Below are positions 9,657 to 60,300 of a stretch of 64,000 bases of DNA, one piece after another. This stretch comes from Oikopleura dioica (taxonomy: Eukaryota > Animalia > Chordata): positions 7,626,001 to 7,690,000 of the forward strand of contig OU015567.1 of assembly GCA_907165135.1 (NCBI GenBank), written 5' to 3'. A program made the translations under genes and the position numbers. Under the pieces are notes generated by a model, which worked only from the letters and a program-made list of their open reading frames with translations, made no database searches and had not been told where the DNA came from. The stretch's first letter is position 1, and every line of letters starts with the position of its first letter.

Positions 9657-9680
9657 TGCCTTGACTGTGGATCGAACACA

Positions 9681-9724
<44 letters not shown>

Positions 9725-9729
9725 AAGGC
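9657..9729 (-). tRNA. tRNA-Phe (GAA)
   Basis: GCCTTGATAGCTCAGTTGGGAGAGCGTCAGACTGAAGATCTGAAGGTCCTGTGTTCGATCCACAGTCAAGGCA: cloverleaf, A and B boxes, anticodon GAA, followed by a TTTTT terminator. Confidence 0.97.
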
Positions 9730-9737
9730 GAAGGATA

Positions 9738-9811
9738 TGGCCAGTACGGGGATCGAACCCGCGACATTCGCGTTATTAGCACGACGCTCTAACCAACTGA
9801 GCTAACCGGCC
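9738..9811 (-). tRNA. tRNA-Ile (AAT)
   Basis: GGCCGGTTAGCTCAGTTGGTTAGAGCGTCGTGCTAATAACGCGAATGTCGCGGGTTCGATCCCCGTACTGGCCA: cloverleaf, anticodon AAT. Confidence 0.97.
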
Positions 9812-47431: not shown

Positions 47432-47988
47432 GAAGAAGCCGCTTTTATTTTTTTAGCACTGTCCATTTTATTTTTTTCAATAAAATCTTTCCTTTTGATA
47501 ATTTTGTGCGTGTTAATTTTTTAAATAAGGTAAAATGGAAATGATTATTTGAGTTGAAAACAGGATTTCGGTGAAAATAAGTCAGGAACTGTCCAAAGAT
47601 GAAGTTTTTGGAGACTTGAATCAAAACACCATAATGCCATATTTAACCAGATATTCCGGGATCGATTTTCGGTCTTTTGCTTCAGCTCTGGTCTCTCTTC
47701 AAAACGTATAATTCTTTCGCCTTTTACTAAAGAATTCCGTGGAGAGGGACACTCTTATGAGTATTTGAATTTTTCTGAAGCCTCACACGAGGCAGTAACC
47801 CTGAACTTTGACCTCGGTTCTGAGATCTCACCTCCGACGGGGGATTATCCATCGGTCGCAGGCTGCTCGCAGCGATTCCTTTCCCGATTCGTCTTTTACA
47901 TCTTTTGATTAGTGTTGGTTGATTTTGACGTTTGTCGATATATGCTACTGCATATAATATGTAATATCATGAATTATGATAATAGTAT

Positions 47989-48583
47989 GACGCGCTTTTT
48001 TTAAGGTTGTGCAAGTTATTTCTCCCACTTTTTCTTTGAAATACCCATAACATCATATATATTTGGAATCAGTGAGAAATATCAAAAACCGTGACCTTTT
48101 TAGTTTATCGAAAATCATTTCCGGTTTCGACTCTAGAGTCGGAAGTTGGCGAAATTAATGAGAATGTTATGCTTGTGACCTATCAAATTGAAGCTAAGAA
48201 CGTTTTAAATCATTTTCAGATCGCGTTCAGATTCGGTTCCCTTTGGTTTAGTGCGCTCTTTTTTCAGTTTGAAATTCGTAAAAATATGCCAAATATCGAT
48301 TTTTTTCTCTCGTTTGACCGGTCGTTCTGACCGCGGTTTGATTTAATTTCTCTTCCAAGAGACTGGAAATGTTCTATGCTCCAGTTTGATAGGTCACATG
48401 CATGCCATTCTCATAAATTTCGCCAACTTCCGGCTCTAGAATCGCAACCGGAAGTGATTTTCAAGAAACAAAAAAGGTCACGGTTCTAGATTTTTTCTGC
48501 TGATTCCAAATATGTATTGCATGCCAGGTTTTGGAATTAGTAAGTAGGTCAAATAACTTGCACAACCTTAAAAAAAGCGCGTC
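47989..48583. mobile_element. Foldback MITE (595 bp), 33-bp perfect TIR, 3-bp TSD
   Basis: TIR GACGCGCTTTTTTTAAGGTTGTGCAAGTTATTT at both ends, TAT on both flanks and long internal inverted repeats containing GCCAACTTCCG. The superfamily (PIF/Harbinger-like) is inferred from TSD length only. Confidence 0.9.
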
Positions 48584-54351: not shown

Positions 54352-57300
54352 TTAGGAAAGGATTTCAGTCAAGCGCCGATCAGAAGAGAGGGGTTGATTG
54401 TAAATCATCGCAGCTCTTGCCCTAGCGATGAAGTCGTCGTATTTCTTTTGCTTTCGACTCTCTGCTGTCAGTTCTTCAGACTTGAGCTTCAGCATTGTCA
54501 GAATATATTGGAGCTGATCAGCCGGTCGAATGTTTTGTCGAGCCTCGAATTTACGATAACATAATATCACTTTTTTCAACATACCCGATTATCTGCATCG
54601 CTGATGACTACAATGATAAAATTAACGATTGCGAAAATCGCAACAATCAGATATCCAATGTGGTAGATCCTAAGGAAGAAAACAGCTTCGCCTTTTTCCA
54701 CGATCGGTTTGAGATCGTTCGGTTTCAGGTAGCCAAAGACCATCAAAGAAACGACACTGTCGCCAAAAGATTTGAAACGGCCGCTGTATGAGTTCAGATA
54801 AGCCATCCCTAAAACTTTTTGGAAAATGAACTAATATATAAATACCGATAAGAGCGAAGGCGACAGTAATAGGGACCATGAAACACGCGAGGCCGAGGGA
54901 TTTTCTGACAACTTTTCGAATCACATCGAAGTAAATCTTTACCATGTTGAGGCCAGTGAGCACGAATATAACATGGAATGAGTTGAAAAAGAGCGCAAGG
55001 GCGATCGTTACCGAGCAATAAGTTTGTAAACTAAAAGTATGATTTTCAAGCGAAAGTAGTACAATTCTTACATGAAAACTTGGTCGAAAGGAGGACGCTG
55101 TCTCGGGTTGATCGAGTACAGACGGACCGCTTCCTTGGTCACGAGCAATCGACTGATAAAGAAGTAGATCATCAGGCTGTCCATCAAAACAAAGACCGTA
55201 TTCGCGAACAATTTTTTGTCGAATTTCTTTGAATATATTCTCCGAATAAACGAGATCAATTTTAAAATGAACTGGATCGCAAAAACACAGTACGCTGCGA
55301 AATAAATGTTGGACTGTGAGCCAAACGTGTAGACGAATTGGTTGATCGAGAGTGTCGGAGTGTAGCCGCCACCTGGGGCTCTTTCGAAGGTTAATCGGAG
55401 TTGCGCGAAAATGTTGATGTTTCCGTTGAAATAAGTTTGTTCGATCATGAGGAAAGACGTTGAGTTGTCGATCCAAGCACTTGATTGCAGCTCCTCGATG
55501 ATCAGTTCGCAAGAGTTCAAGTCGACTCCCAACTCGGCTTCGTATCGATGCTCGGTTATTGAGGTGGGAATGAGCTCGATGTAATCTTCAGGAACTTGGC
55601 TCTCGCTTGAGATCCACGGAATTAGGAACGGTGACTCCTTCTCGTATTCCTTCATATCTTCAATACTTCGAGGAACCCACTTTGGCGCATAATTGCCTCC
55701 TTGTCTTCTTGTCTGCAACAGTCGAGCGGGTCCAACTCGCAGCGATATCTTGTCACTAGCTTTTCGCCTTTCAAATGCGGACAACAACTTCCCGTCGTAA
55801 CTTGTATTCGCAAAATTGACCCTTTTGAAATCGTTGACAACCGACCAAATTTCATCAACGGTGACGATATTCTCGGTAAAGTCAGAGCGAAAGCGGGAGC
55901 GCAGGTTTTTATCGACTTCGAACTTTTCAGTTGCAATGAAGCTTCGAGAAAGCAGAAAGTATACGGCTTAAAATTAAATTATTTATAGAGCAACTTTGAT
56001 GAGAGACTATTGCTTAGCGTCATACCGCGTAGAATGAACCAGTTCTCGTCCGATCACTGAAGTTAAACTACGACGGGCGGGGTTAGTACTTACATGGGTG
56101 ACCGGTTGGGAATACCTCGTGCGCTAAGCATTTTGCGTTTTTCGTACGTGGATCATCCTTTTTTCGGCAAGGTCATTTCCGCACAGTCTGGCTGATGAAT
56201 CGAACGATGAGCTATCGAAAAAGGCTGTGATTGTGTAAGGCAAGTCGCATGGATTGAGAGTGTAGCTTGGCTGGCGGGCGGCTTGGCACTTGCGAAAAAG
56301 CGCCCTCTGACGCGCGCTTTTCTGAAAAGAGGCCGAAAATAGGAGCGCGCAGCGACAAAACGACCTCGAAATCAAGCACCCTCTTTCTTTACTCATCCCA
56401 TTTTTGAGTCCGATTTCGATTGTCTAACAGGTAAGAATCGTATCCATGCCCCCTCTCTCCTATCCCTCTCGCCTCTTACAAACAATAACCAGCACAACAA
56501 GAAAAATGGGGTCTTCGGACGCGCTTTTTTAAGTTTTTTCCAGCCAACTTCCGCCATATAAACCCTAGTGTTCACAATTGTAGCTACAACCGCTCGGTAT
56601 TTACCGCTAAAACGGTCCGAATTCTCTGCTGATTCTAAAAAGGTACCGTATTTGGGGTCTATAAGGCGGAAGTGGGCTGAAAACTTCGTTAACCTTAAAA
56701 AAGCACGTCTGAGCATAAATTTGAAAGGTCAGAGTTTACCTTAACTCCTTAATTTCGTCAACTTCCGACCCTAATATCGGACCGGAAGTGAAATTTCCAA
56801 AAACTAAAACCGTCAAAGTTCTTAAAATTTCTTGCTGATTGCATTCGGACCGTTTTGGCGGAAAATACCGCTACAATTGTGAGCACTAGGGTTGATAAAG
56901 CGGAAGTTGGCTGGAAAAACTAAAAAAAAAAGCGCGTCCTGTTACTCCGAAGACCCTATTTTTCTTGTTGTGCTGGTTATTGTTTGTAAGAGGCGAGAGG
57001 GATAGGGGAGAGAGGGCATGGATACGATTCTTACCTGTTAGACAATCGAAATCGGACTCAAAAATGGGATGAGTAAACAAAGAGGGTGCTTGATTTCGAG
57101 GTCGTTTTGTCGCTGCGCGCTCCTATTTTCGGCCTCTTTTCAGAAAAGCGCGCGTCAGAGGGCGCTTTTTCGCAAGTGCCAAGCCGCCCGCCCGCCAAGC
57201 TCCACTCTCAATCCATGCAATTTGCCTTACACAAACACTGTCTTTTTCGATAGCTGATCATTCGATTCATCAGCCAGAACGTGTGGAAATGACCTTGCCG

Positions 57301-60300
57301 AAAAAAGGATGATCCACGTACGAAAAACGCAAAATGCTTAGCGCACGAGGTATTCCCAACCGGTCACCCATGTAAGTACTAACCCCGCCCGTCGTAGTTT
57401 AACTTCAGTGATCGGACGAGAACTGGTTCATTCTACGCGGTATGAAGCTAAGCGTTAGTCTGTCATCAAAGTTGCTTTATAAATGTATTTATTTATTTTT
57501 ACCTGTAGTAATTAAAGTCATAATTATCATCCTGAAAGTCTGATGAATTGATTTTTTGAACTGTTTGTCGATTCTTGCAGCCTTTGTTGCTCTGGCATCA
57601 TTGATTTCCGACGGTTTCTGCGTTATTTTTGCAATTGAAACTTCAAACGAGTCATGCTTTACTCCAGACGGGTCGTGGATGAAATACTTGGCCTGGCTTT
57701 TCCTTTTGAAGCCGAAAAAGTACGAAATGTAGCCTTTCAAAAGCACGATTAAAACGGGGCCAGCGAGGAAGTCCGTGATGATGCCAAGGATTTGACTTCC
57801 AACCCAATTTTGAACGGGGACCTTGGTCAGCTGTAATCCGTAAAGAATCGTGAAAAAGTACGAAGTCAGAATTACAAGAGTGCAGAGAATGTAAGCGAAC
57901 GGTCTCATCCATCTAGAGCGCCCAACGTTAAAGTTGTCCGCCCCCGAAGCTCCCTGGAGAGAAGATGGTAATGTGTTCTGAAAAACCCAAGTGAAGACCA
58001 AAGTTGTTGTTACTGTCAGTGAGGTAACATAAAGATTGACCAAGTACGATTGTGGATCAAGCTGAATTGGCCCTATCTCGATCGGCGTCGTTTTCGGCGT
58101 CTGGTAAAACATCATATTCGCCACCGAAGCAACCGACAAAGTAGCGTGCACTATCATCGTCTTGGCGGAACGATTACAGAATGCCCAAGGACTGTATGAA
58201 AATATCGCTATTTTGATGTTCTCAATGTGGAAGTTTTTCTTGAGAATCGTGATCGGATTCGCACTCAGATTTTCTTTCGGCGCCATGTTCAATTGTTTCA
58301 AAAGCTTCTTACTCGGTGCGGTGAGAATTTCTGTTTCTTCTGACAATCCAATCTTTCCGGAAAGTTTGAATTGGTTGACCTTCTCGAATTGTTTCTTGAT
58401 AGAACCAAATGCAGGAATTCCTGTGGTTGATTCTGATCGTGGAATATAAACCTTGACGCTTTCGGGTCTCCAGGAAATGTCCATTCCTTCGAAGTTCGCC
58501 CAGAGCTCCACTCGATGTGCTTCTTCTAGAGGCGCGTTACTTCTGATCAAAAACGCTTGTTCGCTTCCTGGAGTGAAATTGCTCCCTTCCGGCAAAAGCA
58601 GCGAATAACTTCTGTGGATAAACGCTCCATGAAGGAAGCGCTCTAGATCACTCGCTGCATAAGTGGATTTTATGTGGAACGAGATGTAGCCAGTTTGCGG
58701 ATTTTTCATGCCAATGGACGCGTGAGTCGAGGTTCGGACGACAATAAGATAGTCCTGTTGATGCAGATTGTACCGGTTGTGATAAGATCGCAAGTCTACC
58801 AACTTGAGCTGAGTAAGGTCCTTTTCATCGTTTCTTCGAGACCAGATGCACATGGCCGCCCAAACTCCCACCATGAGTATGACAAACTGAATGATCGGCA
58901 TTGCACAGTCCATGCACACGTTTTTGAAAACACTGCTGAAGTCGATTGTCGATGGAGGAGCAAACACTTTTGTAGAAACTTTTACGTCTGCCGATGTTTC
59001 TCCGCAGTCACAACTGGTCAATTCTGTTGTCGTTGCGAATGGATTGACTTGACAAGTATCGTAGTCCCAGGTGCCTGCAGCAGAATCAAGGATCTGACAG
59101 GAAGCTGTAGTGTAAGTGATGTTAACCTCGGTGGGTTTTATAACCTTGATGTCAGTCACCATAGCGCCGACGAATAAAAAGCATTTCGGAGAGTTGGTCT
59201 TTTTCATGCAGTTATCAATTTCATTTTTTGGCAGTCGAAGTCCAAATTTATTGCCAGTTGATTCTTCACAATGAGTTCCGCTCTGATCAACAACATTACA
59301 TTCCGCCGTTGTCAGCGCAGGAATATTCACATCGTCATGAGTAGTAGCTGGTAGGGCAAGTTTGAACTCGTGAACAAAAAATTCCGGATTCGGAGGAGAT
59401 CCGTAGTTGATATAAACCATCATTGAGAGAGCATCAGTTTTGAAATTGACGTAAAAGTCGGTTGATTTTAGGATCTCAATTTTGATCGATGTGAACTCTT
59501 TGTCCGCTAGTGCTCTTGAAACAAGATTCGGTGGTTTTGAGTTTCTAACTGCGAATGAAAGCGGTTTGTCCCCATCTGGTGTTTGTAAACCAAGAACTGG
59601 CTCGTCTGTCGCATCATCGTCGAGGGCAAAAACGTTAACCTTAGACACCATAATTGTTCCATCATGATTTCCGTCTTATCGCAGGTTCAGAAGATAAAGC
59701 GAAATCCGAAAAGAAGGAAAATAGAACCCGTTCCTAGAGTAAATGAAGAAATATTCACCGGAGCGCCTGATCTTAATTTCTTGGAGCCAAGTTTCATGAA
59801 CATCATTCCATCAGAAGAATTGCCAATCATTGTTCCTTCCGGCTGAGTATCGAGCAAAGCAATAGTTTTCTCAACTGCACTTTCAACAAGCTTCTTTGCC
59901 TCAAGCGCTTTTTCATTAGCCCCCGAGTTTTCATATTCCTTTTTGATTTCCGACTTCATCAGCCTCTCCGCAAAACCATCAGAGTCAGAAGATTCCTTTA
60001 CGTGTGACGCAGCAGTGACGACCTGAAAAGACTCCAGCACTGTAGCGACTTTGAGCGCTGCGTCTTGAGCGGAAGCGATGTCATTGATTTCGGCGTTATC
60101 GACTTCTTTTAGAACAGTTTCACTTTGCGCTAGAACTAAAGCGACTTTTTCATTCAGTTCTTTCGCTACTTCTTCTGATTTCTCGAAAACAACTGCGTCT
60201 TTTTCTTCATCTGATGATTCTGAAGTCATTGAAAAGTCATCAACTTCTATCACTATCTTCGTGCATGATCTGGCATCATCTGTTGTCGAGAAACCAATGT

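Follow-up and report, generated by a model that had tools for sequence, protein, structure and literature searches.

The locus described here lies in a stretch of 64,000 nucleotides of the Oikopleura dioica genome (assembly GCA_907165135.1, contig OU015567.1, positions 7,626,001 to 7,690,000 of the forward strand), hereafter called the window, to which all coordinates refer. On its minus strand, a gene of the polycystin family contains a predicted intron of 1,536 nt, nearly filled by a palindromic cassette made of two 5S ribosomal RNA (rRNA) genes and two spliced-leader (SL) RNA genes. They are found in the order 5S(+), SL(+), centre, SL(-), 5S(-), the two arms converging tail to tail. This layout, proposed in an initial annotation of the window, is borne out by Rfam matches, RNA reads and comparison of the inverted repeats. 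Each arm carries a 5S gene with an SL gene downstream on the same strand, the two arms form an inverted pair, and the unit is present in multiple copies: the locus is confirmed to be one copy of the known O. dioica 5S rRNA and SL RNA inverted repeat. At the orthologous site other lineages have uninterrupted coding DNA, and the lineage represented in the window has probably received these 1.5 kb by insertion.

Two 5S rRNA and SL RNA units within a polycystin intron

The arms of the inverted repeat, 55971-56519 and 56946-57494, are 549 nt long and 95% complementary; when gaps are allowed, the repeat extends to 651 nt (55972-56622 and 56843-57494), at 91.7%. The arm divergence of about 10%, reported initially, is thus appropriate if the transposon-derived inner part is included, but not for the outer 549 nt. 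Arm against arm, the 5S gene is identical at 118 of 119 positions, the 45-nt stretch preceding the SL exon at 44 of 45, the SL exon at all 40 and the remaining SL RNA at 51 of 53; 12 of the differences are concentrated in a single 92-nt spacer block, 56181-56272 (~13%), and altogether the arms are unlike each other at more than 20 fixed positions. Three Okinawa-type DNA samples were compared with the window: X1 and X2, from one study, and X5, from another study and ~3.6% diverged in the flank. Position 56310 is an A, read on its own strand, in both arms, and a C in nearly all other genomic copies found in the three DNA runs; this private base, common to both arms, indicates that they are each other's closest relatives, i.e. 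sister copies. In the same runs, contig depth summed over the arms exceeds the flanking depth by a factor of tens, which is not to be taken as a copy number.

Both 5S genes are full-length matches to the Rfam model (Table 1). The right one features a single change, G8T, by which a pair of helix I is broken, and which is flagged as a mismatch by Rfam. A TATA-like box precedes each gene and is found at an equal distance upstream of the 5S copies on metagenome contigs; clear homology between the arms begins at these boxes. A low-threshold Rfam scan of the intron revealed nothing beyond the two 5S genes, and a sub-threshold match to a microRNA precursor was rejected, being merely the transposon hairpin described below. 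Upstream of the right 5S gene, within 57457-57490, X1 and X2 differ from the window at 6 positions and by a 4-nt indel, all within ~30 nt; one of the changes hits the TATA-like box, the window allele being the one nearer to the left arm. This variability could stem from gene conversion between the arms, or else mean that the right 5S copy is under relaxed constraint.

The ends of the SL exon could be fixed at the RNA level. In RNA run X14, a template-switch oligonucleotide directly precedes 56391 in ~178,000 reads, and ~211,000 reads continue past 56430 into unrelated mRNA sequence, so that both exon ends are defined by reads starting at the former position and leaving at the latter. In each arm the exon starts ~260 nt downstream of the 5S gene, on the same strand; it does not vary among 23 aligned copies, and 21 copies from metagenome contigs have the identical exon. 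The 45-nt element which adjoins the start of the SL RNA is kept in ~17 O. dioica-like metagenome copies, while sequence farther upstream is not, and is presumed to be the proximal promoter. On the other side, other genomic copies depart from the locus at 56481 (joints 56481->56986/7). Taken across copies, the limits of the conserved blocks suggest an SL RNA gene of about 56391-56483, producing an RNA of ~93 nt, and we infer that these particular SL and 5S copies are transcribed. The sole canonical Sm-site-like motif (AUUUUUG) is found within the SL exon, at 56399-56408 in the window and in all aligned copies; the 3' remainder of the RNA is C/U-rich, conserved and without a U-run.

When JGI metagenome contigs were scanned for the leader sequence, 29 were retrieved. 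Conservation among those resembling O. dioica is limited to the 5S gene, its TATA-like box (~30 nt before the gene), the 45-nt element, the SL exon and the 52-55 nt after the SL donor, ending in ...CTCGCCTCTTACAAA. Outside these blocks the sequence varies from locus to locus, and the upstream flanks of the 5S copies diverge beyond the TATA box. Converging SL pairs are found on contigs L030, L016 and L014, around centres of 300-375 nt which are neither palindromic nor transposon-like; an SL copy belonging to one such pair (L030:1-91) has TT in place of the donor GT (CTAACAGTTAAG), and is probably dead. The overlapping contigs L009 and L016 read SL(+), 375 nt, SL(-), 5S(-), 135 nt, 5S(+), a chain of alternating orientation, so that a head-to-head contact between 5S/SL units, through their 5S ends, occurs as well. 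On contigs L007, L006, L021 and L004 the 40-nt SL exon is identical, with 5S genes only 92% alike and unrelated SL promoters. L007 contains a tandem array with a 594-nt period and genes on one strand, L006 and L021 arrays with a 726-nt period and genes on opposite strands; other larvacean-like organisms thus seem to keep a tandem layout of the nematode style.

The host gene was, as initially proposed, recognized as a polycystin gene, its downstream exon containing a Polycystin_dom (Pfam PF20519, E 1.7e-12) and its orthologue from Bergen, protein CBY33004.1 (P0001), additionally a PKD_channel. Exons were searched and compared singly, without a spliced model, and the codon interrupted by the intron was identified by visual inspection. 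On the gene strand, the donor side reads CTACAG/GTAAAAAT, at 57503/57502, and the acceptor side ATTTTAAG/CCGTAT, at 55967/55966; the upstream exon ends in ...ACTACAG, and the downstream side is CCGTATAC. The intron splits an Ala codon, G/CC, corresponding to residue 554 of P0001, whose residues 1-553 and 555-852 align to the flanking exons without any indel, and the frame is restored upon intron removal. The next intron downstream in the gene, 55027-55071, is seen as an RNA joint. A longer Bergen model, of 1,973 amino acids (aa), adds EGF and ephrin-receptor-like repeats. A second intron of the window, 59677-59735 on the minus strand, is 59 nt long, has non-canonical GA..AG ends, lies in phase 1 after CTAG, forms the upstream limit of the exon preceding the 1,536-nt intron and is absent from Bergen DNA; the EGF part and the polycystin part thus belong to one reading unit, like in the longer Bergen model.

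Most O. dioica introns are shorter than 50 nt, and those exceeding 1 kb are a few percent (PMC4122922); with its 1,536 nt, the intron described here is one of the latter. Clear arm homology leaves at most 15 and 19 nt of AT-rich sequence free at its ends, close to the ~14 and ~18 nt estimated initially. When compared with each other, these outer ends match in 9 of 19 columns (47%), which is not above the expectation for their composition, and their homology was accordingly rejected; in the terminal eight bases, CTTAAAAT (left end) nearly mirrors GTAAAAAT (right end, read as reverse complement). The intron is predicted to fold into one hairpin, with a minimum free energy of -1196 kcal/mol versus about -430 for shuffled sequences and intron positions 12 and 1528 forming the outermost pair. 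In a transcript, this stem of ~650 bp would set donor and acceptor ~20 nt apart.

Long-read assemblies are known to fail at palindromes, none of the contigs covers the structure from end to end, and just upstream of the right 5S gene the window departs from all X1 and X2 contigs by the changes described above, features all compatible with an inverted duplication produced during long-read assembly or polishing. However, independent short-read contigs from X1 and X2 match the inner junctions, 56478-56636 and 56827-56987, with 0 mismatches; contigs bridging exon and 5S gene were found for the right side in X1 and X2, and for the left side in X5. Moreover, the arms differ at fixed positions, and the inverted arrangement is the published norm for 5S and SL genes in this species. 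Locus-specific junctions are thus available from all three samples and, together with the long-read assembly, they make an artefact, a possibility raised in the initial annotation, very unlikely.

Table 1. Features of the cassette, its host gene and the free foldback element (window coordinates)
Feature	Position	Strand	Basis or remarks
Free foldback element	47989..48583		595 nt; flanked by TAT on both sides; reference for the centre
Host exon downstream of the intron	55072..55966	-	86% identical to P0001 residues 555-852
Whole intron (predicted)	55967..57502	-	1,536 nt, GT..AG, phase 1; sequence, orthologue alignment, exact 1,536-nt gap versus Bergen DNA
TATA-like box TTTATAGAG	55982..55990	+	30 to 22 nt upstream of left 5S
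5S rRNA, left arm	56012..56130	+	Rfam RF00001, 98.5 bits, full length (model positions 1-120)
T-runs TTTTGCGTTTTT	56131-56142	+	RNA polymerase III terminator type; directly after left 5S
Conserved 45-nt element (GCAGCGACAAAACGACCTCGAAATCA...)	56346..56390	+	Adjoins SL RNA start; mirror 57075-57119 (-)
SL exon, left (ACTCATCCC...CTAACAG)	56391..56430	+	40 nt; RNA read ends; donor GT at 56431-56432
SL RNA, 3' (non-exon) part, ends ...CTCGCCTCTTACAAA	56431..56483	+	Metagenome conservation stops here; mirror 56983-57034 (-)
Transposon-derived centre	56518..56937		75% matches to both arms of free element 47989-48583
Short foldback unit, termini GACGCGCTTTTTT...AAAAAAGCACGTC	56518-56710		Within the centre
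Half element ending in AAAAAAGCGCGTC	56713-56937		Within the centre
SL exon, right	57035..57074	-	Identical to left copy; mirror read signals at 57074 and 57035; GT follows
5S rRNA, right arm	57335..57453	-	Rfam RF00001, 92.7 bits, full length (model positions 1-120)
Mirror TATA-like box TTTATAAAG	57475-57483	-	Upstream of right 5S
Host exon upstream of the intron	57503..59676	-	89% identical over 553 aa to P0001, to residue 553

Presence and absence of the cassette between lineages

The Bergen haplotype contig which encodes P0001 (L001) is without a 5S gene and is uninterrupted at the site, where it reads ...CTT GTC ACC ACA GCG GTC TAT TTT...; the Bergen reference scaffold (L033) is likewise continuous coding DNA. 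Two marine metagenome contigs (L031 and L032), 97% alike and ~88-89% identical to Bergen, are uninterrupted as well, and by their sequence constitute a second lineage. In a whole-gene alignment of window and Bergen DNA, the only two large differences are the extra 1,536 nt, where the placement of the gap is ambiguous by the dinucleotide AG, and the 59-nt intron. Since both Bergen and the second lineage read straight through the site, the entire 1,536 nt are lineage-specific. The comparison between strains, suggested initially as a check, thus reveals a cassette present in three Okinawa-type samples and absent in Bergen and in the second lineage; rather than in all lineages, as a reading without any empty site would have it, the cassette is missing from all four contigs just mentioned. 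The empty site in two other lineages supports the early proposal that the cassette was inserted as a unit. The sequence left outside the palindrome was also proposed to be about the size of a mini-intron, but the other lineages have no intron whatsoever at this site.

The reading we favour, and hold as quite probable, is that the cassette was inserted, the recipient being an exon or else a young mini-intron. An insertion, possibly into an exon, is supported by the presence of only 15 and 19 nt outside the arms, by the near-mirror ends, by the low arm divergence and by the recurrence of the end motif at other 5S copies: the sequence [C/G]T[T/A]AAAAT, which forms both intron ends, also closely precedes the 5S TATA box in 3 of 5 metagenome copies, the unrelated ones on L010, L029 and L030. 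That the cassette itself made the intron, by insertion into a polycystin coding exon in the Okinawa lineage, is a genuine possibility, to which we would assign somewhat less than even chances. In such a case the insertion has to reach both splice sites; clear homology stops 15 and 19 nt short of them, and the end motif which recurs upstream of other 5S genes is AT-rich. An intron made in this way would have survived because the AT-rich sequence upstream of the 5S genes happens to read, on the gene strand, GTAAAAAT and ATTTTAAG, and because its palindromic transcript would zip the splice sites together.

A different history would have an old intron, with or without the cassette, predate the split of the lineages and be precisely lost before the Bergen-type and second lineages separated, their ancestor having recombined at the site with a cDNA of spliced mRNA. 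Intron turnover is very high in O. dioica, and precise losses are frequent (review PMC4122922). Furthermore, the intronless lineages are nearer to each other (~88-89%) than to the window (~75-82%), so that for the intron itself one loss is equally parsimonious as one gain. The 59-nt intron of the host gene, found only in the Okinawa type, has the same distribution, ordinary introns thus also differing between lineages. On the other hand, the 1,536-nt intron is almost without ordinary intron sequence, and its arms diverge by 0-13%, depending on the segment, far less than the ~20-25% which separates the lineages in coding DNA, even in exons; at least the inverted duplication is therefore younger than the split, unless the arms were homogenized by gene conversion. 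We consider such a loss unlikely, although it deserves to be kept in mind.

Besides the parsimony of a loss and the distribution of the 59-nt intron, some other observations weigh against the insertion of functional, spliced-out genes favoured here. Word-based protein searches started from the 716-aa exon, from P0001 residues 300-800 and from P0001:505-625 retrieved either Bergen-type relatives only or nothing, and no outgroup. No X14 reads were found across the exon-exon junction, the depth over the host gene being 0-1.5 and that over the flanking exons zero; splicing of the 1,536-nt intron, which we infer, rests on the GT..AG ends, the phase and the orthologue alignment. Reads stemming from the SL and 5S copies of the cassette are indistinguishable from those of other genomic copies, and the right 5S copy, with its helix mismatch and a TATA region variable in X1 and X2, may be decaying.

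The centre of the palindrome and the route of the event

The centre of the palindrome derives from a miniature inverted-repeat transposable element (MITE) or foldback transposon, as judged from its resemblance to the free element at 47989-48583, whose inverted arms are 151 nt long and 84% alike, with termini of 57 nt at 82%. Within the centre, a short foldback unit is followed by a half element (Table 1). Many genomic copies, as seen in the three DNA runs, end at 56710 or branch at 56840, and no X14 RNA reads were mapped on 56518-56937. A U5 small nuclear RNA (snRNA) gene, at 47683-47795 (86 bits), lies 190 nt from the free element, and two tRNA genes, 8 nt apart, are found elsewhere in the window, at 9657-9811 on the minus strand.

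This composition raises the question of whether the palindrome was seeded by its own centre, a single 5S-SL unit lying beside the element, whose inverted repeats would have snapped back in the course of repair or replication, so that the flank was duplicated in reverse on the opposite side. Sequences adjoining the two transposon termini are indeed mirror copies until the termini are reached (...TCTTCGGAGTAACAG/GACGCGC), except that 9 nt between two GGA triplets are deleted on the left, and a plain insertion into unique DNA would not yield mirrored flanks. Similarly, neither terminus of the centre has a 3-nt flank repeat, unlike the free copy with its TAT...TAT; the free ends of other copies are mostly followed by triplets starting with T. 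Mirrored flanks, however, could also result from transposon insertion exactly on the axis of a pre-existing palindrome, the centre is itself rearranged, and elsewhere in this genome copies part from the arm at 56481, short of the transposon. The converging SL pairs of other lineages, with their centres neither palindromic nor transposon-like, also speak against it; for the same reason, transposon-seeded palindromes were rejected as a general rule. On balance, seeding by the central foldback is a tentative proposal for this locus, and rather an improbable one.

The initial annotation considered the cassette a mobile palindromic unit. In the transposon sense, this would imply a unit with its own ends, moving as a whole, landing in introns and elsewhere, and still active. 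The empty site in other lineages, the filling of the intron nearly end to end and the recurrence of the end motif at unrelated 5S copies are all in its favour. Against it, no target-site duplication (TSD) was found at the intron borders beyond the dinucleotide AG, which is itself the acceptor dinucleotide, and needed for splicing anyway; the initial remark that no unambiguous TSD is visible thus stands. No transposase open reading frame was found. The outermost 15 and 19 nt, besides matching each other at only 47%, show no likeness to the termini of four other foldback or transposon elements of the window. The 5S upstream flanks differ beyond the TATA box and the centres differ between loci. 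The ~13% arm difference in the unconstrained spacer block indicates that the unit is not recent, and the cassette is held by 3 out of 3 Okinawa-type samples: no empty allele was found in X1, X2 or X5, nor any cassette-skipping joint among the joints listed. These results do not support the proposal, and we consider a mobile unit of this kind improbable, more so than either an old intron lost elsewhere or a palindrome seeded by its centre. What does hold of the same annotation is the dispersal of the units, rather than their confinement to one tandem array, as already published (PMC8008620).

At least as likely as a mobile unit is that break repair captured the unit or copied it ectopically. 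O. dioica has been reported to be without classical end-joining genes (PMC4122922). On this presumed route, the insertion would have come about through break repair or ectopic copying, and not by transposase action; the insert would then persist because it is spliced out exactly, the hairpin of the transcript possibly aiding splicing by keeping the splice sites close to each other.

Relation to known systems

The arrangement itself is already known, and the locus adds no new kind of element. New are the lineage-specific nature of the whole 1,536 nt, an intron which is nearly all cassette, with a hairpin fold, and the MITE-derived centre. If inserted as proposed, the locus would provide a clean and dated case of functional small-RNA genes inserted in a coding region and tolerated as an intron, with an empty site in two sister lineages. 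It opens the question of how 5S/SL units spread in a genome lacking classical end-joining and most transposons, and that of whether the foldback shape lets a 1.5-kb insert be spliced by a machinery tuned to 47-nt introns. For the transcription of intron-hosted copies, the locus gives lineage-specific markers, along with single-nucleotide polymorphisms which distinguish the arms, such as 56019 (G/T, in the 5S gene) and 56452 and 56458 in the 3' portion of the SL RNA. Should the cassette indeed have made its intron, and should such events recur, new introns would arise from 5S/SL palindromes without requiring a transposase, in a genome famous for its intron turnover.

In the available text of Bliznina et al. 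2021 (PMC8008620), which cites Ganot et al. 2004 (Mol Cell Biol 24:7795), O. dioica is described as having inverted repeats of 5S and SL genes in more than 40 copies, on nearly every chromosome; of the 27 copies counted in the Okinawa assembly, 22 belong to inverted repeats, and among the chromosomal scaffolds only the Y-specific region is without a copy (PMC8008620). The locus shares with them the same genes, with the 5S followed by the SL on the same strand, the inverted pairing and the dispersed, multi-copy occurrence, and its 40-nt SL exon is, as in those repeats, the one found at mRNA 5' ends. In contrast, a copy forming a complete intron of a coding region, absence at the orthologous site and a transposon-derived centre are unmentioned in that text, as far as it was available. 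The C. elegans genes for SL1 RNA and 5S rRNA are found in ~110 tandem copies (PMC1657053). The physical linkage of a trans-splicing donor gene to 5S is common to both systems, but the nematode genes form one tandem array, whereas here the genes lie on the same strand within each arm, and the arms in dispersed inverted pairs.

A second comparison is with introns made by transposons. Introner-type elements make introns in other eukaryotes. Like introns derived from foldback transposons, the insert is absent from orthologues, is bounded by GT..AG with the frame restored, and has its ends joined by a foldback. Unlike them, it features neither terminal inverted repeats of a transposon family nor a TSD, there is no evidence of many intron-creating copies, what it carries are paired housekeeping RNA genes and not transposon sequence, and its splicing is predicted. 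For Oikopleura, transposon insertion has been listed as a route of intron gain (PMC3443670).

Finally, the locus may be compared with small-RNA genes residing in introns. Small nucleolar RNAs (snoRNAs), and some tRNAs and snRNAs, are hosted in introns of protein-coding genes. As in those cases, independent or processed small-RNA genes are found here within an intron of a protein gene. Unlike in hosting of the snoRNA type, the 5S and SL genes have promoters of their own and do not need host transcription, they lie on both strands, and, rather than being contained in an intron, they constitute it.

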